A stretch of DNA of 64,000 nucleotides from positions 1,798,001 through 1,862,000 of the forward strand of contig OZ251234.1 in the NCBI GenBank assembly GCA_965240325.2, in the 5' to 3' direction. Shown here one piece after another: positions 32,773 through 48,449 of this stretch. Both the position numbers and the translations under genes were made by a program. The notes under the pieces are model-generated. The model did not search any database. It worked only from the letters and a program-made list of their open reading frames with translations, and was not told where the DNA came from. This stretch comes from Rebecca billardiae RCC1528 (Eukaryota; Protista; Haptophyta). The first letter of the stretch is position 1. Each line of letters starts with the position of its first letter.

Positions 32773-35447
32773 TCAGAAGCGCTCCACCTCGCCCATGGAG
32801 GAGCCGTCCGAGTCCGAGCGATACCCTCCGCCGCGCGCGCCACCCGTGCCAGCACCAGCGCGCGCTTCGGGCTCATCCGCGTCGCTGTTGTCGGAACTCT
32901 CGTCGTCGTCGCTCGACGGGGGCTGCCCCCGCCCCACGCGCACGTGTGCGTGCGCGCGGGCGCGCGGCGCACGCGCGGGCACGGGCGGCGCTGGGCGCGG
33001 CAGCGGGTGAGGGCACACTCGCGCGGCGGCGGACGTGCGCGCGGTCGCGCAGCACCGACGGCGTCGCGCGCGTGCGCGCGCGCGCGGCGCACGCACCGCC
33101 ATGCCCCCCTCCACCACCCTCGTCTCGCCCCTGAGTCCGGTGTAGGCCACGGGCGGCGGCGCGGTCGCGGGGCGCGCGCCGTCGTCCGCGGCCGCGCGCG
33201 CGCGGGTCTCCGCCTCCCTCGCCGCGGGCGGCTCCACCGAGGCTGCCGGCAGCGCAGCCGGCGGTGGCGTCGCCTCGGCAGCGCGCGGCGCCGCGCTGCC
33301 CACATCAGCCGCCGCCGCCGCCGGGGACACCTGCGGCAGCTCGGGGCGCTGCGGCGCCGCCTCGCACGACGCCGCGCCCGCGCCAAGCGTGCCGCCGGCG
33401 CGGGCGGGCGGCGCGGCCGTCCCCTCACGGCCAGCCGCAGAGGACGCGCCCGCTCCAGCCGGGCCCAGCGCTCCTGCGCGTTCGCCCGTGTCCGCCGCGC
33501 CGCCGTCCGCTCCTGCTGCGCCCGCGCGCGGCGGCCGCTCGGCGCCCGAGCTCTGATCGGGCGGCAGCGTGTTCGCTTGCGCATGCGCGGCGGCGGCGGC
33601 TGCGGCGGCAGCTGCGGCCGCGGCCTCGGGAGCGTGAGAGCTGGGCGCCGGTGGTGGGTGCGGCGGCGCAGCCTCCTGATGCTCGTGCGCCGCACAGGCC
33701 GGACCCGCCGCATCGGCCGAGCCGCTGCACTGCCCAGCCCCGACGACGCCCGCCGCAGGCGGCGGCGGCGGCGCGGGCGGCGCGCTTGGCGCCGCCACAG
33801 CGGCCGCGGCTGGCTGCGCGCGCGCGGCGCTCACACTGCCGGCGCCGGGCGGCCCGGCCGACTCTGCGAGCCGGGGGGCGAGCGCGCTCGCGAGCCGCGT
33901 CGCCAGCTCGCCGTGCTTCGCGCCGCCGAGCGCGCCGCCCGCCAGCTCGGCGATGGCGCCCCGGTCGGGCCGAAGCTGCGCCGTGACCGCGGCCGCAAGA
34001 GCGTGCGCGTCTGCGGCGTCCGCGCCGCCGCCGCGCGGCGTGCCGCCGCGAGGCGTGCCGCCGCGCGGGTTGTCCGCGGCCTCGCGCAGCGCGGACCCCA
34101 CCGAGGCCGGGTCGGTGAGGTGCAGCAGCAGCTGCACCGCCTTGATCACGTGCTTCGGCCTCCCCCTGTCCGCCAGCCGCTGCCGAACGACGTCGAGCGC
34201 CACCGCCAAGCTCTCCTCCGACTCCGCCACCGCCGCGGTGAGTAATGTGAGTGCCGAGCGCTCGGGCGGCGCGAGCGAGTTGGCGGTGCACAGCCGCGCG
34301 GCCGCCTCGAGCTCGGAGCGGCCGGCGAGGCGGTTGGCCACGGCGCGCCGGGCGCTCTGGCCCAGCCGGCGCGCGGAGAGCCGCCGCCGCCGCACAGCCG
34401 GCGCCGGCACCGCCGTGGCGGCTAGGCCGGCCTGGGGCTGAGCCGAGGGCGGGGGCAAGGTGGCTGGCGGCGGCGCCGTCGACGGGCGCGCGGCTGGCTG
34501 CGCCGCTGAGGCGGCGGGCGATGGGGCGAGCGCAGCCGGCGGCGGCGCGCCCTGCTCGACCGTCGCCTGCGCCGACTGCCGCTGCGGCTCGCCGTGCAGC
34601 GGCGGCGGCGGCGCGTGCGGCGGCGGCGTGGCGGGCCGCGGCGGCGGCGTGGCGGGCCGCGGCTGCGGCGGCGGCTGCGCGCCGTGAGCGGCGGAGACGT
34701 CCACCACGGGCCCCGGCGCCTCGCCGGCGGGCGCGCTGCGGGGCGGGACGTGCGCACCCGCGGCCTCGTCGTCGCCAAAGTCGATGTCGATCACGTCGAC
34801 CGACTCCGCCGCCTCGGCGTCGGCGCGCTCGGCGCGCGGGCGGCCGAGCACGTCCGCACCGACCTGGCCGCCCGCCGAGCCCATCGACACGGCCTCCCAG
34901 GCTTGCGCCGCCTCGTCGGCGTCGCGCTGGACGGCATCCGCGGCGCGCTCGGCTTTCGACACGTCCGGCAGCGCCGCCGGGAACTCGTACACGTCCTCCT
35001 GCACCGCGGCGCCGGTGCGCGCGCGCGCCTGCGCGAGCGCGGTGTCCGCCTGCCTCCGCGCCTCGCGCGCGGCGGCAGCCTCGCCGTTCGCCTCGTCGTC
35101 GTCGCTCACGATCGCCTCGTCCTCGCCGTCCGCGATGCCACGCGAGGTGGCGTCGGGGCCGGCGCCCACCTTGCTGCACGCCGCACGCCGCCGCGAGCGC
35201 CGGGGCCAGGGGCGATGTGTGAGCCATCGGGCGGGTGTGTGCCGGTGTGCGCCGACGGGCGGGCGGCGCGGTCGAGCGGGCGCGCGGCGCGCGAGGGCAG
35301 GCTGGGACAGGCGTGCCCGTACCTGAGGAAGCTCGCATAGCCCTCCGTGCGGGTGGCCGCGCTCCGGCTCTTCACGAAGCCGAGCTGCGCGCTCTCGTCG
35401 CTCTCGGCGTCGCGCGCCTGCTGCAGATTGATGCGCGTCGACGCCAT
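32773..35447 (-). CDS. Hypothetical Ala/Pro-rich protein with acidic patches; spliced
   Basis: Exon 1 is 35447-35323 (MASTRINLQQ...YASFL). GT-AG intron 35322-35174 (GTACGG...GTGCAG) joins in phase 2 to the long ORF (SKVGAGPD...). A second in-frame intron is probable at 33096-32923 (GTGCGT...GGGCAG). No recognisable domain. Confidence 0.6.
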
Positions 35448-35644
35448 CCTGCAACGGCCCACTGTGCGTCTGCGTCCGGATGAGGAACCCACCTGCGGCG
35501 CAGTCCGGCCGCGTCAAAATCACGGCGAAGAGTGAGTCGCACGGCCAACGGTCTTCGCGCGATCACACCCTCCACACCGTCGTCGCCGGGGCGGCAGCGC
35601 ACCAGTCGTGCGCCTCGACAGGGAGCAAGGAACCGCCGGCACGG
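35448..35644. promoter_or_regulatory. Probable bidirectional promoter / 5' UTRs
   Basis: 197 bp between divergent ATGs at 35447 (-) and 35645 (+). Positional inference only. Confidence 0.4.
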
Positions 35645-37321
35645 ATGGACGAAACCAGCGCCGCGGTGAAGCTGCTTCAGCGCAGATCGGCGCGAGGTGA
35701 CGCGCGTGCCACGTACCTCCTGGCTGATCGCGTCGCGTGCGGAGACGGCGTCGCTCGGAATGAGCGCGAGGCGACGCGCCTGTTCAACATCGCCGCCGAG
35801 CGCGGGTCTGCGGAAGCTCAGCTTACACTTGGCAACTACTATGATCAGGGCCTGCGTGGACTGGACCGAAACGCCATCAAGGCCGAGCGCTGGTACCGGC
35901 TGGCGGCCGAGCAGGGCAACGCAAAGGCGCAGTACAATCTGGGCGTGTGCTTTGCGAATGGCGATGGCGTACCGCAAGACCTGGCAGAATCCTTGCGCTG
36001 GTACCGGCTGGCGGCTGAGCAGGGCCACGCGAGAGCGCAGTGCGCTCTGGGCTTGCTCTCGTACAAGGGCGAGGGCGTGCCGCAAGACATGGTCGAGGCG
36101 GTGCGCTGGTTCCGGCTGGCGGCCGAGCAGGGCAACGCATTCGCGCAGTACTGTCTGGGCCGCTGCTGCTACAAGGGAGAGGGCGTTCAGCAGGACTGGG
36201 CGGAGGCGGCGCGCTGGTTTCGGCTGGCGGCTGAGCAGGGCCATGCTCATGCGCAGTACTGTCTGGGCCGCTGCTGCTACAGGGGAGAGGGCGTTCAGCA
36301 GGACTGGGTGGAGGCGGCGCGCTGGTTTCGGCTGGCGGCAGAGCAGGGCCATGCTGAAGCGCAGTACCGTCTGGGCCGGTGCTGCAAACAGGGCGAGGGC
36401 GTGCCGCAGGACTGGGCCGAGGCAGTGCGCTTGTACCGGCTGGCGGCCGAGCAGGGCAACGCAAACGCGCAGCACAATCTGGGCGTGTGCTGTGAGAATG
36501 GCGATGGCGTGCCACAAGACCTGGCGGAAGCAGTGCGCTTGTACCGGCTGGCGGCTGCGCAGGGCAACTCATATGCGCAGTACAATCTGGGCCTATGCTG
36601 CCACAAGGGTAAGGGCGTGCCGCAGGACATGGCCGAGGCGGCGCGCTGGTTCGGGCTGGCGGCCGCGCAGGGCGACGCACATGTGCAGCACAGTCGGGGC
36701 CTGTGCTGCATGAATGGTGAGGGCGTGCAGCAGGACTGGGCGGAGGCGGCGCGCTGGTTCCGGCTGGCGGCCGAGCAGGGCCATGCTCAAGCGCAGCACA
36801 ATATGGGCGTGTGCTACCAGAACGGCGAGGGCGTGCCGCAGGACTGGGCCGAGGCGGTGCGCTGGTTCCGGCTGGCGGCCGAGCAGGGCCACGCGGATGC
36901 GCAGTGCTGTCTGGGCGGGTGCTGCCATGAGGGCAAGGGCGTGCCGCAGGACATGGCCGAGGCGGTGCGCTGGTTCCGGCTGGCTGCTGATGGTGATCAG
37001 CCACTGGCGACGTCCCAGCTTGGAGCTCTGACGCTGGCGGGTCTAGTCGTGGAGCGCGATGTGGTGGAGGGCGCGCGGCTGCTGCGCCGTGGGCACGAGC
37101 TCGACAGCAGCACTCGTACCGACCCCTGTGAAGTGCTCAACGCCCTGTTTGCAGGGGACCGCGAGGTTGTGTCCAAATGCTGCCTCGTGTGCGCCAAGAC
37201 GGACCGCGTCGGCCTGAAGAAGTGCGACCGATGCCACGTGGCAGTGTTCTGCTCGCACGACCACCTGCGGCGCGCATGGAAGGCGCACAAGCCGCACTGC
37301 AACGAGTGGCGGCAGCAGTGA
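35645..37321 (+). CDS. Sel1-repeat (13) + MYND zinc finger protein, paralog 1, 558 aa
   Basis: 36-aa repeats AxAQxxLGxCxxxGxGVPQDxAEAxRWFRLAAEQG. C-terminal CLVC..CDRC..FCSHDH..WKAHKPHC. The start MDETSAA is shared by all three paralogs. Confidence 0.92.
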   Translation: MDETSAAVKLLQRRSARGDARATYLLADRVACGDGVARNEREATRLFNIAAERGSAEAQLTLGNYYDQGLRGLDRNAIKAERWYRLAAEQGNAKAQYNLGVCFANGDGVPQDLAESLRWYRLAAEQGHARAQCALGLLSYKGEGVPQDMVEAVRWFRLAAEQGNAFAQYCLGRCCYKGEGVQQDWAEAARWFRLAAEQGHAHAQYCLGRCCYRGEGVQQDWVEAARWFRLAAEQGHAEAQYRLGRCCKQGEGVPQDWAEAVRLYRLAAEQGNANAQHNLGVCCENGDGVPQDLAEAVRLYRLAAAQGNSYAQYNLGLCCHKGKGVPQDMAEAARWFGLAAAQGDAHVQHSRGLCCMNGEGVQQDWAEAARWFRLAAEQGHAQAQHNMGVCYQNGEGVPQDWAEAVRWFRLAAEQGHADAQCCLGGCCHEGKGVPQDMAEAVRWFRLAADGDQPLATSQLGALTLAGLVVERDVVEGARLLRRGHELDSSTRTDPCEVLNALFAGDREVVSKCCLVCAKTDRVGLKKCDRCHVAVFCSHDHLRRAWKAHKPHCNEWRQQ

Positions 37322-37994
37322 GCAGACTCTGTCTCCGCAGAGTCATTGAGACAATAATCGACATTACTTGGCGCAGCAGCATCCGGCCGGCGCCGGCCGG
37401 CGCCGGGCCTGAATCAAGGCCGCACTCAGTCAACATTCGGACGGACTTGAGTCTTAGTGTAAGTGACATAGCCTGGTCCCGCCTTCAGGACTACTACGTG
37501 CACGTGGGCGGCGTTGAGTCAGGCGGTTGAGTCTTGAGACGGACGCGCCCGGGGCGCTGACTCACCATGGCCGGCGCTGACGGATGCCGAATGGGTTGAG
37601 CGTCACCATGCGCGTCAGCAGCAGCGCACGCGCAGTGCCTAAATGCGTCGCAGTCTATGTACGACCACCGCCGCGTCGAGCGTGCCTGCGCTCCGTGCGC
37701 CGTCACCGCTGCTCGCGCGCGTTCTCCCCAGTGCGCCCTGCGCCTGCGGCGCCAGCGTGCGCTGCTTGCCTGGGCCAGGGCCATCGGTAGAGTTTGGGGT
37801 GTGCACTATACATCTCGTACGGTGGCAATACGCGAGGAGCGAGGTCGCGCCCACGGCGACGACGCCGCGCCACGCCAGCCGCAGGCGCCACAAGCCTACA
37901 GCCGTCTCCGCCGGCGTCCGCGCGTTCCTGGGCGGCGCCATCGTGGCCGCGCGTGGGTATACCGGCTCCGGTTTGGACGGCAGGGCCGACCACG

Positions 37995-38154
37995 ATGCAT
38001 GCACGCGCGGCGGCGGCCGCGGCCGCGGTGCTGCTCCTGTGCGTGGCGAGGGGTGCGGACCCGCGCCAGGGCAGGGCGGCGGACCCACCGCCCGCTACAT
38101 CGTCTCGTTCGCGGGCGACAGGCGCGCCGGCCGCGCGACGGCTCTGGACGCGAA
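37995..38154 (+). pseudogene. Truncated duplicate of the subtilase 5' end (signal peptide + start of prodomain), frameshifted
   Basis: Matches 42976-43154 ([35 protein letters not shown]), then breaks off; carries a 1-bp deletion. Confidence 0.8.
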
Positions 38155-38334
38155 AGCGCCGCGCTGGCTCCGGATCCGGTTGACCCGCAGTCCGGCCGCG
38201 TCACGACTGAGAGAAAGAGCCGCCGACGGCGAGTCGGCGCGGCCAACGGTCTTCGCCTCATCCTCCCACACCGTCGCCGGGGCGGCAGCGCACAGTCGTG
38301 CGCCTCGACAGGGAGCAAGGAACCGCCGGCACGG

Positions 38335-39687
38335 ATGGACGAAACCAGCGCCGCGGTGAAGCTGCTTCAGCGCAGATCGGCGCGAGGTGACGCGCGTGCC
38401 ACGTACCTCCTGGCCGATCGCGTCGCGCGCGGAGACGGCGTCGCTCGGAATGAGCGCGAGGCGACGCGCCTGTTCAACATCGCCGCCGAGCGCGGGTCTG
38501 CGGAAGCTCAGCTTACACTTGGCAACTGCTATGATCAGGGCCTGCGTGGACTGGACCGTGACGTCGTCAAGGCCGAGCGCTGGTACCGGCTGGCGGCCGA
38601 GCAGGGCAACGCAAAGGCGCAGTACAATCTGGGCGTGTGCTGTGAGGAGGGCGATGGCGTGCCGCAAGACCTGGCAGAATCCTTGCGCTGGTACCGGCTG
38701 GCGGCTGAGCAGGGCGACGCGAGAGCGCAGTGCGCTCTGGGCTTGCGCTCGTCCAAGGGCGAGGGCGTGCCGCAAGACATGGTCGAGGCAGTGCGCTGGT
38801 TCCGGCTGGCGGCCGAGCAGGGCGCTGTGGCTGCGCAGTCCAATCTGGGCCGGTGCTGCAAGAGGGGCGAGGGCGTGCCGCAGGACTCGGCTGAGGCGGC
38901 GCGCTGGTTCCGGCTGGCGGCCGCGCAGGGCGATGCTTATGCGCAGTGTGATCTGGGCGTGCGCTACGAGAAGGGTGAGCGCGTGTCGCAGGACTTGGGC
39001 GAGGCAGTGCGCTGGTACCGGCCGGCGGCCGAGCAGGGCTACTCATATGCGCAGCACAATCTGGGCGTGTGCTACCACGAGGGCAAGGGCGTGCAGCAGG
39101 ACTGGGCCGAGGCGGTGCTCTGGTTCCGGCTGGCGGCCGAGCAGGGCCACGCGGATGCGCAGTGCTGTCTGGGCCGCTGCTGCCACAAGGGTAAGGGCGT
39201 GCCGCAGGACTGGGCCGAGGCGGCGCGCTGGTTCCGGCTGGCGGCCGAGCAGGGCCAGGCGGATGCGCAGTGCTGTCTGGGCGGGTGCTGCCACGAGGGC
39301 AAGGGCGTGCCGCAGGACATGGCCGAGGCGGTGCGCTGGTATCAGCTGGCTGCTGATGGTGAGCAGCCACACGCCACGTCCCGGCTTGGACTGCTGACGC
39401 TGGCGGGTCGGGGCGTGGAGCGCGATGTGGTGGAGGGCGCGCGGCTGCTGCGCCGTGGGCACGAGCTCGACAGCAGCACTCGTACTGACCCCGGTGAAGT
39501 GCTCAACGCCCAGTTTGCAGGGGACCGCGAGGTCGTGTCCAAATGCTGCCTCGTGTGCGCCAAGACGGACCGCGTGGGCCTGAAGAAGTGCGACCGATGC
39601 CACGTGGCAGTGTTCTGCTCGCACGACCACCTGCGGCGCGCATGGAAGGCGCACAAGCCGCACTGCAACGAGTGGCGGCAGCAGTGA
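38335..39687 (+). CDS. Sel1-repeat (10) + MYND zinc finger protein, paralog 2, 450 aa
   Basis: Same termini as paralog 1; exactly 108 aa (3 repeats) shorter. Confidence 0.92.
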   Translation: MDETSAAVKLLQRRSARGDARATYLLADRVARGDGVARNEREATRLFNIAAERGSAEAQLTLGNCYDQGLRGLDRDVVKAERWYRLAAEQGNAKAQYNLGVCCEEGDGVPQDLAESLRWYRLAAEQGDARAQCALGLRSSKGEGVPQDMVEAVRWFRLAAEQGAVAAQSNLGRCCKRGEGVPQDSAEAARWFRLAAAQGDAYAQCDLGVRYEKGERVSQDLGEAVRWYRPAAEQGYSYAQHNLGVCYHEGKGVQQDWAEAVLWFRLAAEQGHADAQCCLGRCCHKGKGVPQDWAEAARWFRLAAEQGQADAQCCLGGCCHEGKGVPQDMAEAVRWYQLAADGEQPHATSRLGLLTLAGRGVERDVVEGARLLRRGHELDSSTRTDPGEVLNAQFAGDREVVSKCCLVCAKTDRVGLKKCDRCHVAVFCSHDHLRRAWKAHKPHCNEWRQQ

Positions 39688-40404
39688 GCAGACTCTGTCT
39701 CCGCAGAGTCATTGAGACGATCGGGCATTACTTGGCGCAGCAGAATCCGCCGGCGCCGGCGGGCATTACTTGGCGCAGCAGAATCAGCCGGCGCCGGCCG
39801 GCGCCGGGCCTGAATCAAGGCCGCACTCAGTCAACATTCGGATGGACTTGAGTCTTAGTGTAAGTGCCATAGCCTGGCCCCGCCTTCCGGACTACTACGT
39901 GCACGTGGGCGGCGTTGAGTCAGGCGGTTGAGTCTTGAGACGGACGCGCCCGGCCCCGGGGCGCTGAAGCCTCACCATCCCGCATCCGGCACTGACGGAT
40001 GCCGCATGGGTTGAGCGTCACCATGCGCGTCAGCAGCAGCGCATGCGCAGTGCCTAAATGCGTCGCAGTCATGTTCGACCGCCGCCGCGTCGAGCCTGCC
40101 TGCGCTCCGTGCGCCGTCACCGCTGCTTGCGCGCGTTCTCCCCAGTGCGCCCTGCGCCTGCGGCGCCGGCGGGCGCTGCTTGCCTGGGCCAGGGCCATCG
40201 GTAGAGTTTGGGGTGTGCGCGATACATCTCGTGGTGGCAATACGCGAGGAGCGAGGTCGCGCCCACGGCGACGACACCGCGCCATGCCAGCCACAGGCGC
40301 CACAAGCCTACAGCCGTCTCCGCCGGCGTCCGCGCGTTCCTGGGCGGCGCCATCGTGGCCGCGCGTGGGTAAACGGCTCCGGTTTGGACGGCAGGGCGAC
40401 CACG

Positions 40405-40565
40405 ATGCATGCACGCGCGGCGGCGGCCGCGGCCGCGGTGCTGCTCCTATGCGTGGCGAGGGGTGCGGACCCCGCGCCAGGGCAGGGCGGCGAGCCCACC
40501 GCCCGCTACATCGTCTCGTTCGCGGGCGGCGGGCGCGCCGGCCGCGCGACGGCTCTGGACGCGAA
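40405..40565 (+). pseudogene. Second truncated duplicate of the subtilase 5' end
   Basis: Same breakpoint (GCTCTGGACGCGAA). The frame stays open to 40806 and overlaps the Sel1 ATG out of frame. Confidence 0.8.
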
Positions 40566-40750
40566 AGCGCCGCGCTGGCTCCGGATCCGGTTGACCCGCA
40601 GTCCGGCCGCGTCACGACTCAGCGAAGAGCCGCCGACCGGGACGGGGAGTCGGCGCGGCCAACGGTCTTCCCCTCATCCTCCCACACCGTCGCCGGGGCG
40701 GCAGCGCACAGTCGTGCGCCTCGACAGGGAGCAAGGAACCGCCGGCACGG

Positions 40751-42337
40751 ATGGACGAAACCAGCGCCGCGGTGAAGCTGCTTCAGCGCAGATCGGCGCG
40801 AGGTGACGCGCGTGCCACGTACCTCCTGGCCGATCGCGTCGCGCGCGGAGACGGCGTCGCTCGGAACGAGCGCGAGGCGATGCGCCTGTTCAACATCGCT
40901 GCCGAGCGCGGGTCTGCGGAAGCTCAGCTTACACTTGGCAACTGCTATGATCAGGGCCTGCTTGGACTGGACCGAAACGCCATGAAGGCCGAGCGCTGGT
41001 ACCGGCTGGCGGCCGAGCAGGGCAACGCAATAGGGCAGTACAATCTGGGCGTGTGCTGTGAGGAGGGCGATGGCGTGCCGCAAGACCTGGCAGAATCCGC
41101 GCGCTGGTACCGGCTGGCGGCTGAGCAGGGCTACGCGAGAGCGCAGTGCGCTCTGGGCTTGCGCTCGTCCAAGGGCGAGGGCGTGCCGCAAGACATGGTC
41201 GAGGCGGTGCGCTGGTTCCGGCTGGCGGCCGAGCAGGGCAACGCATTCGCGCAGTACCGTCTGGGCGTGTGCTGCAAGAATGGTGATGGCGTGCCGCAGG
41301 ACTGGGCCGAGGCGGTGCGCTGGTTCCGGCTGGCGGCCGAGCAGGGCAACGCATTCGCGCAGTACCGTCTGGGCGTGTGCTGCAAGAATGGTGATGGCGT
41401 GCCGCAGGACTGGGCCGAGGCGGTGCGCTGGTTCCGGCTGGCGGCCGAGCAGGGCAATGTGGCTGCGCAGTCCAATCTGGGCTGGTGCTGCAAGCGGGGC
41501 GAGGGCGTGCCGCAGGACTCGGCCGAGGCGGCGCGCTGGTTCCGGCTGGCGGCCGCGCAGGGCGATGCTCATGCGCAGTGTGATCTGGGCGTGTGCTACG
41601 AGAAGGGTGAGCGCGTGTCGCAGGACTTGGACGAGGCAGTGCGCTGGTACCGGCTGGCGGCCGAGCAGGGCTACTCACATGCGCAGCACAATCTGGGCGT
41701 GTGCTACCTGAACGGCAAGGGCGTGCAGCAGGACTGGGCCGAGGCGGTGCGCTGGTTCCGGCTGGCGGCCGAGCAGGGCCACGCGGATGCGCAGTGCTGT
41801 CTGGGCGGGTGCTACCACGAGGGCAAGGGCGTGCCGCAGGACATGGCCGAGCCGGCGCGCTGGTTCGGGCTGGCGGCCGAGCAGGGCCACGCGGGTGCGC
41901 AGTGCTGTCTGGGCGCGTGCTACAACGAGGGCAAGGGCGTGCCGCAGGACATGGCCGAGGCGGTGCACTGGTTCCGGCTGGCTGCCGGTGGTGATCAGCC
42001 ACTGGCGACGTCCCAGCTTGGAGCTCTGACGCTGGCGGGTCTAGTCGTGGAGCGCGATGTGGTGGAGGGCGCGCGGCTGCTGCGCCGTGGGCATGAGCTC
42101 GACAGCAGCACTCACGACCCCTGTGAAGTGCTCATCGCCCAGTTTGCAGGGGACCGCGAGGTCGTGTCCAAATGCTGCCTCGTGTGCGCCAAGACGGACC
42201 GCGTGGGCCTGAAGAAGTGCGACCGATGCCACGTGGCAGTGTTCTGCTCGCACGATCACCTGCGGCGCGCATGGAAGGCGCACAAGCCGCACTGCAACGA
42301 GTGGCGGCAGCAGACTCTGTCTCCGCAGAGTCATTGA
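40751..42337 (+). CDS. Sel1-repeat (12) + MYND zinc finger protein, paralog 3, 528 aa
   Basis: Same architecture. Repeats 5 and 6 are identical 108-bp units. A 7-bp deletion removes the stop used by the other paralogs and adds TLSPQSH. Confidence 0.92.
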   Translation: MDETSAAVKLLQRRSARGDARATYLLADRVARGDGVARNEREAMRLFNIAAERGSAEAQLTLGNCYDQGLLGLDRNAMKAERWYRLAAEQGNAIGQYNLGVCCEEGDGVPQDLAESARWYRLAAEQGYARAQCALGLRSSKGEGVPQDMVEAVRWFRLAAEQGNAFAQYRLGVCCKNGDGVPQDWAEAVRWFRLAAEQGNAFAQYRLGVCCKNGDGVPQDWAEAVRWFRLAAEQGNVAAQSNLGWCCKRGEGVPQDSAEAARWFRLAAAQGDAHAQCDLGVCYEKGERVSQDLDEAVRWYRLAAEQGYSHAQHNLGVCYLNGKGVQQDWAEAVRWFRLAAEQGHADAQCCLGGCYHEGKGVPQDMAEPARWFGLAAEQGHAGAQCCLGACYNEGKGVPQDMAEAVHWFRLAAGGDQPLATSQLGALTLAGLVVERDVVEGARLLRRGHELDSSTHDPCEVLIAQFAGDREVVSKCCLVCAKTDRVGLKKCDRCHVAVFCSHDHLRRAWKAHKPHCNEWRQQTLSPQSH

Positions 42338-42975
42338 GACAATACTTGGTGCAGCAGCATCCGCCGGCGCCGGGCGGCGACGGGCCTGAATCAAGGCCGC
42401 ACTCAGTCAACATTCGGACAGACATGAGCCAGATTAGTGTAAGTGCCATCATCATAGCCTGGTCCCGCCTTCCGGACTACGTACGTACGCGGGCGGCGTT
42501 GAGTCTTAGACTTAGGAGGTTGAGACGGTCGCCACGGGCGCGGACTCACCATCAGCCGCTGACGGATGCCGCATGGGTTGAGCGAGGCCATGCGCGTCAG
42601 CAGCAGGGCACGCGAAAGTGCGTAAATACGTCGCAGTCTATGTTCGACCGCCGCCGCGTCGAGCCTGCCTGCGCTCCGTGCGCCGTCACCGCTGCTCGCG
42701 CGTGTTCTCCCCAGTGCGCCCTGCGCCTGCGGCGCCGGCGGGCGCTGCTTGCCTGGGCCAGGGCCATCGGTAGAAATTTGGGGTGTCCGCTATACATCTC
42801 GTGGTGGCAATACGCGAGGAGCGAGGTCGCGCCCACGGCGACGACACCGCGCCATGCCAGCCACAGGCGCCACAAGCCTACAGCCGTCTCCGCCGGCGTC
42901 CGCGCGTTCCTGGGCGGCGCCATCGTGGCCGCGCGTGGGTAAACCGGCTCCGGTTTGGACGGCAGGGCGACCACG

Positions 42976-45900
42976 ATGCATGCATCACGCGCGGCGGCGG
43001 CCGCGGCCGCGGTGCTGCTCCTGTGCGTGGCGAGGGGCGTGGACCCCACGCCAGCGCAGGGCGGCGGACCCACCGCCCGCTACATCGTCTCCTTCGCGGG
43101 CGACAGGCGCGCCGGCCGCGCCGGCTCGAGGGCCGCGACGGCTCTGGACGCGAACGCGCGGCTCGCGGCAAAGGCGCGCAGGCGCTTCACCGCGGTGCTC
43201 GACGGGTTCGCGGCCGAGCTGACGGCGGAGGAGGTGCGCGAGTGCGAGGACATGGGCGCGAGCGTGACTGTCGACGCGCGCGTGTACGCCGGCGTGGGGC
43301 CCGGCAGGCGTGCGAAGCAGGGCGGGCGAGGCGCGGGCGGCGTCGGGCGCGCGTCGGGCGGCGGCGGCGGCGGCGTGGCGAGCTGGGGCCTGGACCGGAT
43401 CGATCAGCCGGACCTGCCGCTCGACTCGCAGTACTCGCCCACGCTCGACGGCTCGGGCGTGCACGTCTTCGTCATCGACACGGGCGTCAACGCCAACCAC
43501 ATCGACTTTGCCGGCCGCGTGGGCGACGGTTTGAATCTGGTCGACGACGGCCAGCCGGCCGACGACGCCGACGACGGGAACGGGCACGGGACGCACTGCG
43601 CGGGCACGGCGGTGGGCACGGTGCACGGCGTGGCGAAGGGGGCCACGCTGCACGGCGTGCGCGTCCTCGACGACGACGGCAACGGCTTCGTCTCCGACTC
43701 GATCGCCGGACTCGAGTGGGTGGCGGCGCATCCGGCCCGTCTCAAGGTGGCGTCGATGTCGCTGGGCGGCGGGCCCGCGGCGGCGGAGGACGAGGCGGTG
43801 GCGAACGCGGTCGCGCTGGGCGTGACCGTCGTCGTCGCCTCGGGCAACGACGGCGGCGACGCGTGCGACTACTCGCCCGCGCGCGCGGCGGCGGCGATCA
43901 CAGTCGGCTCGACCACCGCCGCCGACGTCGCTTCTTCCTTCTCCAACTCTGGCGCGTGCACGGACATCCAGGCGCCCGGCTCGGAGATCGCGTCGGCGTA
44001 CATCGGCTCGCCGACCGCGACGTCCACGCTCTCCGGCACCTCGATGGCCACGCCGCACGTCTCGGGCGTGTGCGCGCAGCTGCTGCAGCTGCTCAACTCG
44101 CCCGACCCCGCGGCGGTGCGCTCGGCGCTCCTCGAGATGTCGGTGCGAAATCGCATCGCGGACTCGTGGCGGGTGGGCAGGAACGTGCCCAACGTGCTGC
44201 TGCAGGCGGTGACGCAGGCGATCGGCCCGAGCCCGCCGCCCGCGCCGCCCTCGCCGCCCTCGCCGCTGCCGCCGCCGCCCGCGCCGCCGCTCCCGCCCGC
44301 CCTGGAGCTGCAGATTGTGATCCAGCCCGACGACTATCCGGCCGAGGTGCGGCCGAGGGCAGCTGGGGAGATGCGATCTCCCGCGCGGAGCGGGGTGCAG
44401 CGGGGAGCGGGCGCGGCAGGGGCGGCGCGCGTGGGTGCACGGGCGCGTGTGTGAGTGCGTGTGTGTGCAGCCGCCCCGGCGGCCTCAGGCCTGCGGTGCG
44501 CGGGCGCAGCACACACACACGCGCACGCACGCACATGCACACACGCACGCCCATCTCCGCGCGCGCTGAGTGCTGCGAGCGCTGACGGAGCCCCGCGCTC
44601 TCCCCCTCGCGCGCTCGCGGCCGTCCGTTCGCCCGCCCGCCCGCAGATCTCCTGGGAGCTCGTGGGCGCCGGCGCGTCCGAGCCGCTCGCCGCCGCGCAG
44701 CTCGGCTCCAGCTCGGCGCGGCGCGAGTGGAAAGAGTCGCTCCCGCTCGGGCAGTACGTGTGGACGGTGTTTGATTCGTTTGCGGATGGGATCTGCTGCG
44801 CGTACGGCGACGGCTTCTACGAGCTGCGGCTCGACGGCAAGCTGCTGGCGACGGGCGGCGAGTACGGCGCCTCGGAGAGCGTGGCCATCAACGTGGTGGG
44901 CCCATCGCCAAGCCCGTCGCCGGCGCCGGCGCCGCCGCCGAGCCCGCCGCCGCCGCCGCCGCCGAGACCGCCGCCGCCCTCGCCGCCGCCGAGCCCGCCG
45001 CCGCCACGGCCACCGCCGCCGGCATCGCCGCCCCCGAGCCTTCCGCCGCCGCCGCCGCCGTCGCCGCCGCCGAGCCCGCCGCCGCCGCCGCCGAGCCCGC
45101 CGCCCTCGCTGCCGCCCTCGCCACCGCCGCCGCCCCCGTCTCAGCCGCCGCTGAGCCCACCTCCGACGCCACCGCCACCGCCCTCGCCACCGCTCTCGCC
45201 GCCGCCGAGCCCGCCGCCGCGGCGTCCGCCGCCGAGCCCGCCGCCACTCCCTCCGCCGCCGCCCCCTTCGCCGCCGCCGTCGCCCCCGCCCCCGCCGCCG
45301 AGCCAGCCACCCTCGACGCCAGACCCGCCCTCGCCGCCGCCGTTGCCTCCTCCGCTGACGAGTGAGCCGCCGTCTCCGCCGTCCCTGCCGCCGATGCCCC
45401 CTCCGCCGCCGCCCTCGCCGCCACCGTCGCCACCGCCACCGCCGCCGCCGAGCCCGCCGCCGAGCCCGCCGCCGCATCCACCGCCAAGCCTGCCGCCGAG
45501 CCCGCCACCCAGCCCGCCGCCGAGCCCGCCGCCAAGCCCGCCGCCGCCGCCGCCGCCCTCGCCTCCACCCTCGCCGCCGCCGCTGCCTCCGCCACGCCCG
45601 CCGCCAAGCCCGCCGCCATCCCCGCCGCCGCATCCACCGCCCAGGCTGCCGCCCAGCCCGCCGCCCAGCCCGCCGCCGAGCCCACCGCCGCCAAGCCCGT
45701 CGCCGAGCCCGCCGCCTGCACCGCCGCCGAGCCCACCGCCGAGCCCGCCGCCGAGCCCGCCGCCGCCCTCTCCACCGCCTCCGTCCCCGCCTCGCTCGCC
45801 CCCGCCGAGCCCGCCGCGCGCCACCCCGCTCCCCCCGCCCTCGCCCTCGCCGCCCTCGCACCTCTTCTCGCTCGCCATCGTGCCCGACGACTACCCCGAG

Positions 45901-48449
45901 GAGACGAGCTGGGCGCTCTACTCGGACGCGACGGGCGGCTCGGAGGGCGAGGCGGGAGATTGGCGCGAGATTGCGTCCGCGCAGCTGCTGGTGAACGACA
46001 CGCTCGCGCCGAGCGCGGAGCTTGAGCTGGCCGACGGGCGCTACCGGTTTGTCATCGTCGACTGGTCCGCGCCACTGCGGCCTGCGCGCCTCCCCGCGCG
46101 CGCACGTGCGCTCACCACCCCTGTTGGCTGAGGGCATGGACGAGATGCAATCTCAAGGCTGAGTGCATGGCCGAGATGCAATCTCAAATCCAGCGGGGCT
46201 TGGACGAGATGCAATCTCAAATCCAGCGCGGTCGGCAGGCGGCGCGTGCACAGCTGTGAACGGATGACTGCAGCGAGCAGTGCGGCACTCCAAGTGCAGC
46301 GCAGCACCGGTGACGGCGCACCGCTCAGCCGAGCCCGCCCGCCGCCCGCGCCACCGCCGCGCCGCGCGCAGGTACGGTGACGGCATCTGCTGCGTGTTCG
46401 GCGCCGGCAGTTACACGCTCAGCCTCGACGGCGAGACCGTCGCGACGGGCGGACAATTCTTTTATTTCGAGGAGACGGATTTCGACACGCGCAGCTCGCC
46501 GCCCTCCGCGCCGCCGAGCCCGCCCGCGCCGCGCGAGCCGCCGTCGGCGCCGCCCAGCCCGCCCTCGCCGCCGCAGGAGGCGCTGCTCATCCGGATTAGT
46601 CCGGATGATTACCCGCTCGAGGTGAGCTGGACGCTCGAGCGCGACGCGGGCGGCGGCGTGTGGGCGCAGCTGGCCTCGGCCGCGCTCCCGCCGTCCGCCG
46701 AGCCGCAGGAGTGGACGGAGCGGCTGCTGGCGGGCCGGTACAACTTCACCATCCTCGATGAGTACGGCGACGGGCTGTGCTGGTGCGCGCGCGGAGCCGC
46801 ATGGAGCGCCAGGCGCGCCGAGCGCGCCAGGCCACGGCACGATTCCGCGCGTGCGCGCGCGCGCGGCGCCCTCGCGCGGTTGCGGGACCCCACTGCGGCG
46901 GCACGGTCGGCCGCGCGGCTGCGGCTGCGCGAAGAAGGCCGTCGCCTGACTGACCGCGCCTTGCTCGCCGGGCGCCACGCACACCACGCACACCGCCCGC
47001 TGGCCTGCCCTGCTGCGCAGCGAGTGGGGCGCGGGCTCCTACTCAGTGGAGCTGGGCGGGGAGCAGCTTGCAAGCGGAGGGGCGTTCGCAAGCTCAGAGA
47101 GCCGCGTGTTCTTCGCGCTGGCGCAGCCGCTGCCGCCGCCCAGCCCGCCGCCTAGCCCGCCGCCCAGCCCGCCGCCGCCGCCTCCCAGCCCGCCACCCAG
47201 CCCGCCGCCGAGCCCGCCGCCGCCACCGCCCAGCCCGCCGCCGAGCCCGATGCCGCCGCCGCCCAGCCCGCCGCCCAGCCCGCCGCCGCCGCCCCCCAGC
47301 CCGCCACCGAGCCCGCCGCCGTCGAGCCCGCCTCCGAGCCCGCCCCTATCACCGCCGCCGAGCTTGCCGCCAACTCCGCCGCCCAGCCCACCGCCGAGCC
47401 CACCCAGCCCGCCGCCATTCCCGCCACCGCCGCCGCCCACGCCGCCACCAAGCCCGCCACCGCCGAGCCCGCCTCCACGCCCACCGCCCAGCCCGCCGCC
47501 GCCGCCGCCGCCGCCACCGCCCAGCCCGCCTCCCAGCACGCCACCGCAACCCGCAAGGCCGCCGCCACCGCCGCCACCGCCGGCACCACCCCCCTCACCG
47601 CCGCCCTCGCCCACGCCTCCGCCCTCGCCGCAACCCTCGCCGCCGCCCGGCCCGCCGCCGCCCTCGCCACCTCCGAGCCCGCCGCCGCCGAGCGCCCCGC
47701 CAAGCCCGCCGCCAAGCCCGCCGCCCGCCCCGCCCGACCCTCCGCCGCGCCCGCCGCCCAGCCCGCCGCCGCTGCCCCCGCCGCTGCCGCCGATCACTGG
47801 CGACACGAGTATCTCGCGCGTGCGCGCGCAGGCGACGATGGCCGGGCAGCAGACCGACTGGAGCGAGGCCACACAATCCGGCCAGCAGCTCCGCGCCAAC
47901 TTCACCGCGGCCGTGGCGGCGGCGCTCAACCTGAGCGCGCCGGACGTGGAGATACTGGCCGTGCTCGACTCGAGCGTCACCGTGGTCTTCGACGTGCTGC
48001 ACAGCGAGAGCAGCGCGGCCGTCGTGCCGACGGTTGAGGCGCTGGCCGTCGTCGTCGCGGCGTCCGCCAAAGCGATCAGCGCTTCGGTCGAGGCCGCGAC
48101 GCGCACCAGCGTGCTCGCCGTCAGCGTGAGCTCGGTCGTCGCCGTCGAGAGCGGGGCGGCGGACGGCGGGACGGGCGGTGGCGCCGATGGCGCCGATGGC
48201 GATGACGACGACGGCGACGGCGACGGCAATGACGGCGGTGGCGGCGGCGACGGCGGCGGCGGCACGGACCCTCGCGCGGCGAGCGTGCCCACGACGCCGT
48301 TTGTGCAGAGCGTCGGCTTTGCTGTCGTGATCGGGGTTGCGTGCTGCCTCGTGCTCCTCGCATGCGCTGGCATTGCGCTCTACAGCATGAAGGCGCTTGT
48401 GCAGCAGCGGACCACGCAGACCATCCGCATCGGCGGGGCGCGGTTATGA
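42976..48449 (+). CDS. Membrane-anchored S8 (proteinase K-like) subtilase with three repeated DGICC modules and polyproline linkers; 4 exons, about 1542 aa
   Basis: Signal peptide; catalytic motifs [20 protein letters not shown] and [10 protein letters not shown]. Exons 42976-44346, 44647-46064, 46372-46782 and 47021-48449 join through GT-AG introns in phases 0, 2, 2, restoring PDDYPAE|ISW, DW|YGDGICC and GDGLCC|EWG. C-terminal [26 protein letters not shown]. Confidence 0.88.
46127..46230. repeat. Intronic triplet of the palindromic motif GAGATGCAATCTC
   Basis: Copies at 46142, 46173 and 46206 inside subtilase intron 2. Confidence 0.85.

Follow-up and report, generated by a model that had tools for sequence, protein, structure and literature searches.

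Three Sel1-MYND genes in tandem

The window analyzed here is a 64,000-nt stretch of the Rebecca billardiae RCC1528 genome (GCA_965240325.2, OZ251234.1, positions 1,798,001-1,862,000, forward strand), and it contains a tandem cluster of three genes, A, B, and C, encoding Sel1-repeat proteins that end in a MYND zinc finger. Coordinates are positions within this window, which is strongly GC-rich (0.60-0.84 per 2 kb). GC at third codon positions (GC3) is 0.81. Gene A is located at 35645-37321 (558 codons, stop TGA; regular Sel1 units at 35924-37003, MYND finger at approximately 37181-37300), gene B at 38335-39687 (450 aa; regular units at 38614-39369, finger at approximately 39547-39666), and gene C at 40751-42337 (528 aa; regular units at 41030-42001, finger at approximately 42176-42295). 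All three are on the forward strand as intact, uninterrupted, intronless single open reading frames (ORFs), each beginning MDETSAAVKLL.

Sel1 repeats (PF08238) were identified with E values of 1e-112 (A), 2e-87 (B), and 1e-107 (C), scoring 285-362 bits in 9-11 stretches per protein and thus above the Pfam family cut-off of 30.7. A zf-MYND domain (PF01753) was found at the C-terminus of each protein at 27.2-27.9 bits (gathering cut-off 22.7). Only these two domains exceeded Pfam cut-offs in A, B, or C, and no NOD (NACHT/NB-ARC), death-type, or enzymatic effector domain was detected. Read in a constant 36-codon register, all three proteins have the same layout: codons 1-93 form a cap made of two degenerate units, and this is followed by a run of regular units (10 in A, 7 in B, and 9 in C), a final degenerate unit, a linker, and the finger. 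Unit totals of 13, 10, and 12 were obtained both by register and by a unit hidden Markov model (HMM), the same numbers that had been counted in an earlier reading made from the DNA letters by themselves (the sequence-only reading). Tandem Repeats Finder (TRF) scored the 108-bp and 324-bp periodicities at 872-1268, too high to be due to chance.

The two ends of the proteins have barely diverged, as that reading had also noticed. Codons 1-93 carry roughly five nonsynonymous changes per pair of genes, A and B differ by a single residue in the 62-codon C-terminal stretch that includes the finger (the change lies upstream of the finger), and the finger itself is identical in all three. At the 3' end of gene C (42314-42337), the TGA used by A and B was lost via a 7-bp deletion (TGAGCAG) between short GCAG repeats, and the ORF extends 7 codons past the ancestral stop (TLSPQSH). 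No signal peptide or membrane segment was seen by eye in the Sel1-MYND protein sequences (no predictor used), from which we infer that proteins of this type would be cytosolic or nuclear adaptors.

Segmental triplication and exchange of repeat units

The genes sit within a tandem segmental triplication, with units of 2.4-2.7 kb, that spans 35534-43127. Homology between the copies, as delimited by blastn, begins at 35534, 38231, and 40647 and stops at 38144, 40555, and 43127. Duplicon 1 (35534-38230, forward strand) is composed of gene A, its 3' flank, a 5' fragment of a subtilase gene, and a junction filler (38145-38230), and duplicon 2 (38231-40646, forward strand) is composed of gene B, its 3' flank, a second subtilase 5' fragment, and a junction filler (40556-40646); the two fillers are homologous but not identical. 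Duplicon 3 (40647-43127, forward strand) contains gene C, an intergenic stretch, and the 5' end of an intact subtilase gene, inside which the duplicons cease to be homologous. This subtilase gene (42955-44454, forward strand; Peptidase_S8, PF00082, E 1.6e-45) is not a member of the Sel1-MYND family and serves as a marker for the right end of the ancestral unit. Because the right duplicon boundary falls 173 bp inside it, a frameshifted copy of its 5' end is present in each intergenic stretch. The first copy (37972-38144, forward strand) covers the signal-peptide region, and its two-frame translations match the true 5' end; the second is at 40383-40555 (forward strand), where 39764-40555 aligns to 42340-43127 at 89%. 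Both copies comprise approximately the first 58 codons together with upstream DNA, in the same orientation and roughly 190 bp upstream of B and C, so these two genes may sit behind a copied subtilase promoter.

Units of the three arrays, written A1, B1, C1, and so on, were matched between genes. The matches A1 = B1 = C1, A2 = B2 = C2, A9 = B5 = C7, and A10 = B7 = C9 run through all three genes, B3-B6 pair with C5-C8 at 97, 96, 94, and 91% identity, and internal duplicates were found in A (A3/A4, 94%) and C (C3/C4, 97%). Units A3-A8 had no close partner. The C3/C4 pair includes a perfect tandem duplication of 108-bp period at 41200-41457 (forward strand; every base in 41200-41349 equals the base 108 positions on), and the adjacent identical units that the sequence-only reading had pointed out here, 41231-41338 and 41339-41446, are exact copies. 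This duplication is the youngest unit gain.

Gene B is nearest to different neighbors at its two ends. Its 5' block is nearest C (96.3%, versus 94.8% and 94.6% for the other pairings), while the block formed by its last unit, tail, and intergenic stretch is nearest A (95.5%) and furthest from C (92.8%); unit B7 is 95.4% identical to A10 and 89.8% identical to C9. A C-like 5' part followed by an A-like 3' part points to an unequal crossover in which the 5' part came from the distal copy and the 3' part from the proximal copy. B is thus best read as a hybrid formed by one such event between two earlier tandem copies, with a breakpoint near B6/B7. The sequence-only reading had placed the mosaic in gene C. 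Mosaicism is indeed present there (C1 is nearer B1, C5-C8 correspond to B3-B6, and A is the closer match for C2, for the DRNA patch, and for the last degenerate unit), but the main hybrid is better placed in B than in C. Additionally, A (36954-37064) and C are 97% identical across a short segment where B (39320-39430) is only about 88% identical to A, C, or paralogues outside the cluster, which we read as a probable B-specific conversion patch. Lineage-specific changes among the three genes occur in runs.

Taken together, unit orthology, the duplicon boundaries, hybrid B, and the C3/C4 duplication agree with the earlier suggestion of diversification by unequal crossover or conversion in 108-bp register. 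The arrays gain, lose, and exchange units in this register, and the locus arose by tandem segmental duplication of one Sel1-MYND gene together with the adjoining intergenic DNA and the 5' end of the subtilase gene, followed by unequal crossover. A recent ectopic import of A3-A8 was considered and rejected, since no close donor was found either among 60 fetched loci of the family (no unit above 92%, best single unit 90%) or genome-wide (best block 83%). Possible origins of A3-A8 are differential loss of units from a longer ancestor, or old arrays whose flanks have been homogenized. Pseudogenization of A, B, and C was likewise rejected, as scaffold departures per unit (0.65) did not differ from those in the rest of the family (0.57, p = 0.26).

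Several other features were observed around the genes. A 38-bp tandem repeat (2.1 copies, 95% matches) is located at 39722-39802 in the 3' flank of gene B. On the left, a 916-codon Ala/Pro-rich ORF on the reverse strand (32773-35523) ends just upstream of the duplicon boundary. On the right, a long forward-strand ORF rich in SPPPP/PPPSPP (44455-46131) directly follows the subtilase domain and represents an extensin-like tail or else a proline-rich gene of its own.

Family expansion, variable positions, and rates of change

The genome assembly comprises 72 Mb in 41 contigs. With gene C as the query, well over 80 genomic places were recovered; with the family-specific tail (last unit, linker, and MYND finger), roughly 130 places were recovered at ≥ 50% identity, many of them in tandem clusters on contigs C3, C5, C10, C13, and C16. 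Sixty loci were fetched, 57 of which had an ORF ending in the finger and 39 of which also had the canonical N-terminus (M..SAAVKLLRRRSARGDARAT...). Together with A, B, and C, these 39 make 42 intact genes of 277-878 residues and 5-23 units, all single uninterrupted ORFs. The zinc ligands (C65, C68, C79, C82, C88, H92, H100, and C104 of the tail) are invariant in all 42 family tails, and residue C64 is invariant as well. Same-strand tandem clusters with three or four Sel1-MYND genes per approximately 8-14 kb were observed at C10:2879400-2890800, C10:3308130-3317339, and C3:1168500-1182830. Some copies in these clusters are near-identical: loci L033 and L039 overlap and contain one and the same gene, and L053, downstream, matches them at 96%.

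Dispersed copies have in common the 50-110 bp directly upstream of the ATG (80-90% identity) and nothing farther out or downstream. This segment was observed in loci L005, L007, L008, L011, L014, L016, and L019 on other contigs, and its counterpart in the window is 35534-35644; it may be a conserved 5' untranslated region or core promoter of a subfamily. Given that nothing else is shared, the dispersed copies are best described as ordinary gene duplicates. Carriage by a transposon or virus was rejected, as these copies lack conserved flanks or termini; GC content is like that of the rest of the host genome.

Relatives were also found outside this genome. A word search with the tail gave no match, and one with the whole protein was dominated by generic long Sel1 proteins. 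Full-tail matches (P0126, P0175, P0204, P0207, P0215 from MMETSP, and P0242) came from an exhaustive profile search and are encoded on contigs of eukaryotic origin in metagenomes and public runs. P0126 reaches 42% identity over 468 residues, and its N-terminal motif is the same. Clusters of 211, 73, 68, and 57 members with the automatic name 'Sel1 repeat/MYND finger domain-containing protein' are present in the ESM Atlas, and Haptophyta is their commonest recorded taxon. In the literature, no study of the Sel1-MYND family in algae or of its evolution was found; the nearest paper is a 2026 survey noting expansions of MYND-bearing alpha-solenoids in Chlorophyta (PMC13126933). The architecture is thus already present in databases, and the size of the expansion may be lineage-specific.

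Within the units, variation is concentrated at a few positions. Across the 26 regular units of the three genes, positions 1, 4, 5, 8, 11, 12, and 35 have entropies of approximately 1.8-3.4 bits, positions 3, 7, 13, 16, 18, 19, 22, 30, and 31 are invariant, and nucleotide identity is 72% for codons 1-14 versus 86% for codons 15-34. A near-invariant scaffold beside a variable first helix, as the sequence-only reading had it, was therefore recovered by direct count. In the whole family (366 regular units from 42 genes), positions 1, 4, 5, 8, 11, 12, 14, 20, and 35 have entropies of 2.2-3.7 bits, while most others are below 0.7.

In an AlphaFold2 (AF2) model of B (pLDDT 93.8), helix A spans unit positions 36 to 12 and is followed by a loop (13-19), helix B (20-32), and a link (33-35). 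This 13-7-13-3 periodicity describes antiparallel helix pairs in a right-handed alpha/alpha superhelix. The top Foldseek matches were all Sel1-like repeat (SLR) structures (6ok3, 4bwr, and 8sxq; E 2e-24, TM 0.7-0.83). Using the AF2 helix limits, positions 1, 4, 5, 8, 11, and 12 fall inside one 120-degree arc of the helical wheel and the conserved positions 2, 3, 6, 7, 9, 10, and 13 fall on the opposite arc, so that six of the nine variable positions form one face of helix A, in line with the earlier expectation. The 8sxq match is LceB (37% identity, TM 0.83), whose authors assign the concave inner surface to helix 1 and the convex surface to helix 2 (PMC10868440). By analogy, the variable stripe most likely lines the concave groove.

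Rates of change were determined from Nei-Gojobori counts on 137 independent unit pairs (greedy pairing, 85-99% nucleotide identity). The proportion of nonsynonymous differences (pN) at the nine variable positions was 0.192, and that of synonymous differences (pS) was 0.146 in the same codons, 0.089 in all codons, and 0.065 in the scaffold codons of helix A. The resulting ratios of nonsynonymous to synonymous change (dN/dS) at the variable positions were 1.37 (bootstrap 1.09-1.74), 2.34 (2.05-2.70), and 3.26, respectively, while that of scaffold positions was 0.37. Restricting the comparison to pairs with ≥ 95% identity gave 2.58 (variable positions versus all-codon dS), and cross-validation, in which the sites were defined on half of the genes and tested on the other half, gave 1.43 and 2.44. 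After Bonferroni correction, positions 1, 4, 5, 8, 11, 12, and 35 exceeded pS, and 1, 4, 8, and 35 exceeded 1.5 × pS.

Non-coding divergence among A, B, and C (0.044-0.093) is similar to their pS (0.036-0.078), which speaks against strong constraint on silent sites. Of the variable codons that differ within the closest pairs, 76% do so by one base (versus 38% in random pairs), and changes per pair are under-dispersed, both of which favor point substitution over conversion tracts. The residues used at the variable sites depart widely from a GC-driven neutral expectation (Gly/Ala/Arg/Pro 12% versus 53% expected; Pro 0.2% versus 12.6%), with polar and aromatic residues enriched, and these sites are thus constrained in kind yet turning over fast. 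Judged from these substitution counts, positions 1, 4, 5, 8, 11, 12, and 35 appear to change faster than silent sites across the family, and the other 27 unit positions appear to be under purifying selection.

Interpretation and comparison with known systems

We favor, with somewhat more than even confidence, the interpretation that the locus is a young tandem cluster of an intronless family of approximately 130 genes forming a groove-diversified binding repertoire kept diverse by selection. Each member would be a right-handed SLR superhelix of 5 to 23 units with a conserved N-cap and a constant C-terminal MYND zinc finger. Variable residues would line the concave groove and set ligand specificity. 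MYND fingers bind PxLxP-type partner peptides, and here the finger would dock all members onto one common partner carrying such a motif. Variable groove specificity combined with common docking would make the family a germline repertoire of binding specificities, the diversity of which is maintained by selection. Its ligands could be foreign proteins, viral or other, or endogenous clients.

Several points weigh against this interpretation. Assignment of the stripe to the concave face comes from homology and helix periodicity rather than model coordinates, and MYND partner binding by A, B, and C is assumed from family knowledge. The sequence-only reading had treated position-specific hypervariability as a signature. 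The sites do vary, but 1,202 units from 120 unrelated Sel1 proteins vary at the same positions (Spearman 0.80), and the pattern alone is therefore nothing special. The dN/dS values come from pairwise counting rather than codon models and were not partitioned for recombination, the most conservative of them is only 1.37, and GC-biased conversion could depress dS. Finally, the elevated dN/dS anticipated at variable sites holds across the family (1.37 to 2.3-3.3) but not in the trio alone, where pN at variable sites (0.123) is close to own-codon pS (0.133) and scaffold pN/pS is near 1, both from small counts. With so few changes in the trio, the selection signal belongs to the family as a whole and is not shown by this locus alone.

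A rival explanation is neutral birth-and-death of a redundant, expanded family, in which exposed helix-A residues are unconstrained, unequal crossover shuffles the units, and dN/dS above 1 results from depressed silent change (codon bias, GC-biased conversion) and micro-conversion between units. In its favor, the positions concerned are those that vary in Sel1 repeats generally, the lowest dN/dS estimate is 1.37, GC3 is 0.81, pN/pS of scaffold and N-terminus in the trio is approximately 0.6-1.2, and 24% of the variable codons that differ within close pairs do so by two or three bases. We nonetheless regard this explanation as somewhat unlikely: the bootstrap interval excludes 1 for each choice of dS, youngest pairs included, and the four strongest positions still exceed 1.5 × pS. 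Moreover, non-coding divergence in the trio matches pS, the near-absence of proline is strongly non-neutral, changes per pair are under-dispersed rather than clustered, and the genes are intact, with degeneration no greater than in the remaining family. That the triplication is a mis-assembly, or haplotypes placed in tandem, is highly improbable. Repeats are hard to assemble, the sole public run containing this sequence is too shallow to bridge the junctions, and the perfect 258-bp duplication in C is without independent support. The copies, however, differ by 4-10% in non-coding DNA and in the order and number of their units, which is too much for an assembly duplication, and the two junctions are homologous but non-identical. 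Units of 2.4-2.7 kb are short for long reads in an assembly this contiguous, many comparable tandem clusters exist elsewhere in the genome, and exact contig pieces from the public run fall at 40154-40422, 40658-40808, and 40816-40966 (B-C intergenic stretch and 5' end of C).

Other alternatives concern what the repertoire would bind. Haptophytes have well-known arms races with giant viruses, and the proteins could be immune-like sensors of non-self, viruses, or pathogens, akin to fungal NLR repeats or Ectocarpus NB-ARC-TPR proteins, with MYND as the signaling adaptor. A large clustered family, repeat-number variation, unit shuffling, and faster-than-silent change on a putative binding face match reports for fungal NLR repeats (PMC4986451, PMC1805685) and for brown-algal candidates (PMC3341825), and the ESM Atlas Sel1/MYND clusters are mainly haptophyte. 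Against this, Pfam found only Sel1 and MYND, with no NOD, death-type, or enzymatic effector domain, within-gene unit identity is below the 85% criterion for fungal repeats, and non-immune substrate-adaptor families can give the same pattern, which leaves the immune reading unlikely. A more specific proposal, that approximately 130 Sel1 solenoids, diversified in groove residues and unit order through selection and in-register recombination and acting through one constant MYND finger on a common PxLxP hub, form a NOD-less germline intracellular recognition repertoire against viruses or foreign proteins, is in our estimation decidedly unlikely as it stands. Organellar RNA-binding alpha-solenoids of PPR/OPR type, with the variable positions as a nucleotide code, were also considered, given that approximately 130 solenoid genes with few variable positions per repeat recall those families and that MYND solenoid expansions were flagged in Chlorophyta by the 2026 survey, which proposes such a role for the green-algal proteins (PMC13126933). 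This candidate was rejected on charge and deserves almost no credence, as the protein surface is not basic (pI 6.2-7.1, net charge −5 to 0), the MDETSAAVKLL N-terminus is acidic and unlike a transit peptide, and the closest structures are protein-binding SLR proteins.

To our knowledge, very little is known about how unicellular algae recognize viruses or foreign proteins beyond the sequence-based candidates from brown algae. If the favored interpretation of a selected binding repertoire is true, the family is a concrete candidate recognition repertoire in which a constant docking finger is joined to a fast-evolving groove reshuffled by recombination, and such an evolutionary mode needs no NOD module. 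Equally, it could be a diversified set of client adaptors. Even under the neutral explanation, the locus illustrates cleanly how a repeat-protein cluster is built and remodeled by tandem segmental duplication and unequal crossover.

MATH-BTB and F-box adaptor families of nematodes and plants are expanded and under diversifying selection. They resemble the Sel1-MYND family in combining a constant docking module with a variable binding module, in forming large tandem families, and in showing selection on the binding surface; we know of no MYND domain that recruits a cullin.

The closest structural relatives are SLR proteins (6ok3 from Oxalobacter; 4bwr, E. coli EsiB/c5321; 8sxq, Legionella LceB; LpnE; Helicobacter HcpC; and SEL1L/Hrd3). 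These have the 36-residue unit, consensus, and right-handed superhelix of the trio, and the same variable positions as the family. The Sel1-MYND family differs from them in its C-terminal MYND finger, its own N-cap, its approximately 130 paralogues in tandem clusters, its freezing of positions 9, 17, 18, 25, 29, and 36 that are normally variable, and its faster-than-silent change at variable sites.

Fungal NLR proteins of the STAND class (HET-E, HET-D, HET-R, nwd; PMC1805685, PMC4986451) also show variation in repeat number, shuffling of units within and between paralogues, and apparent positive selection at a few surface positions per repeat, for which the pairwise dN/dS of 1.37-3.3 at 7-9 positions here would be a possible counterpart. 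The sequence-only reading had seen the fungal NLR signature in this cluster, and that claim did not hold. Highly internally conserved repeats are defined by ≥ 85% amino acid identity between units over ≥ 100 aa (PMC4986451), whereas within-gene unit identity is 0.66 in A, 0.61 in B, and 0.65 in C, the family mean is 0.71, and none of the 42 genes reaches 0.85. The Sel1-MYND proteins also lack a NACHT/NB-ARC module and an N-terminal effector domain, and their variation was seen between paralogues of one genome rather than between alleles. The resemblance to fungal NLRs is thus one of evolutionary mode and not of membership.

The NB-ARC-TPR and LRR-ROCO candidates of Ectocarpus (PMC3341825, PMC11378527) are likewise algal, clustered, and fast-evolving, with shuffled units and hypervariable positions, and were likewise proposed from sequence alone. 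In Ectocarpus, each repeat occupies one exon and units move by exon shuffling, whereas Sel1-MYND genes are single exons remodeled by in-register recombination and are without an NB-ARC or ROC-COR module. The same domain pair as in the trio occurs in the MYND solenoids of Chlorophyta (PMC13126933), where the likeness is by description only, and in the ESM Atlas clusters.

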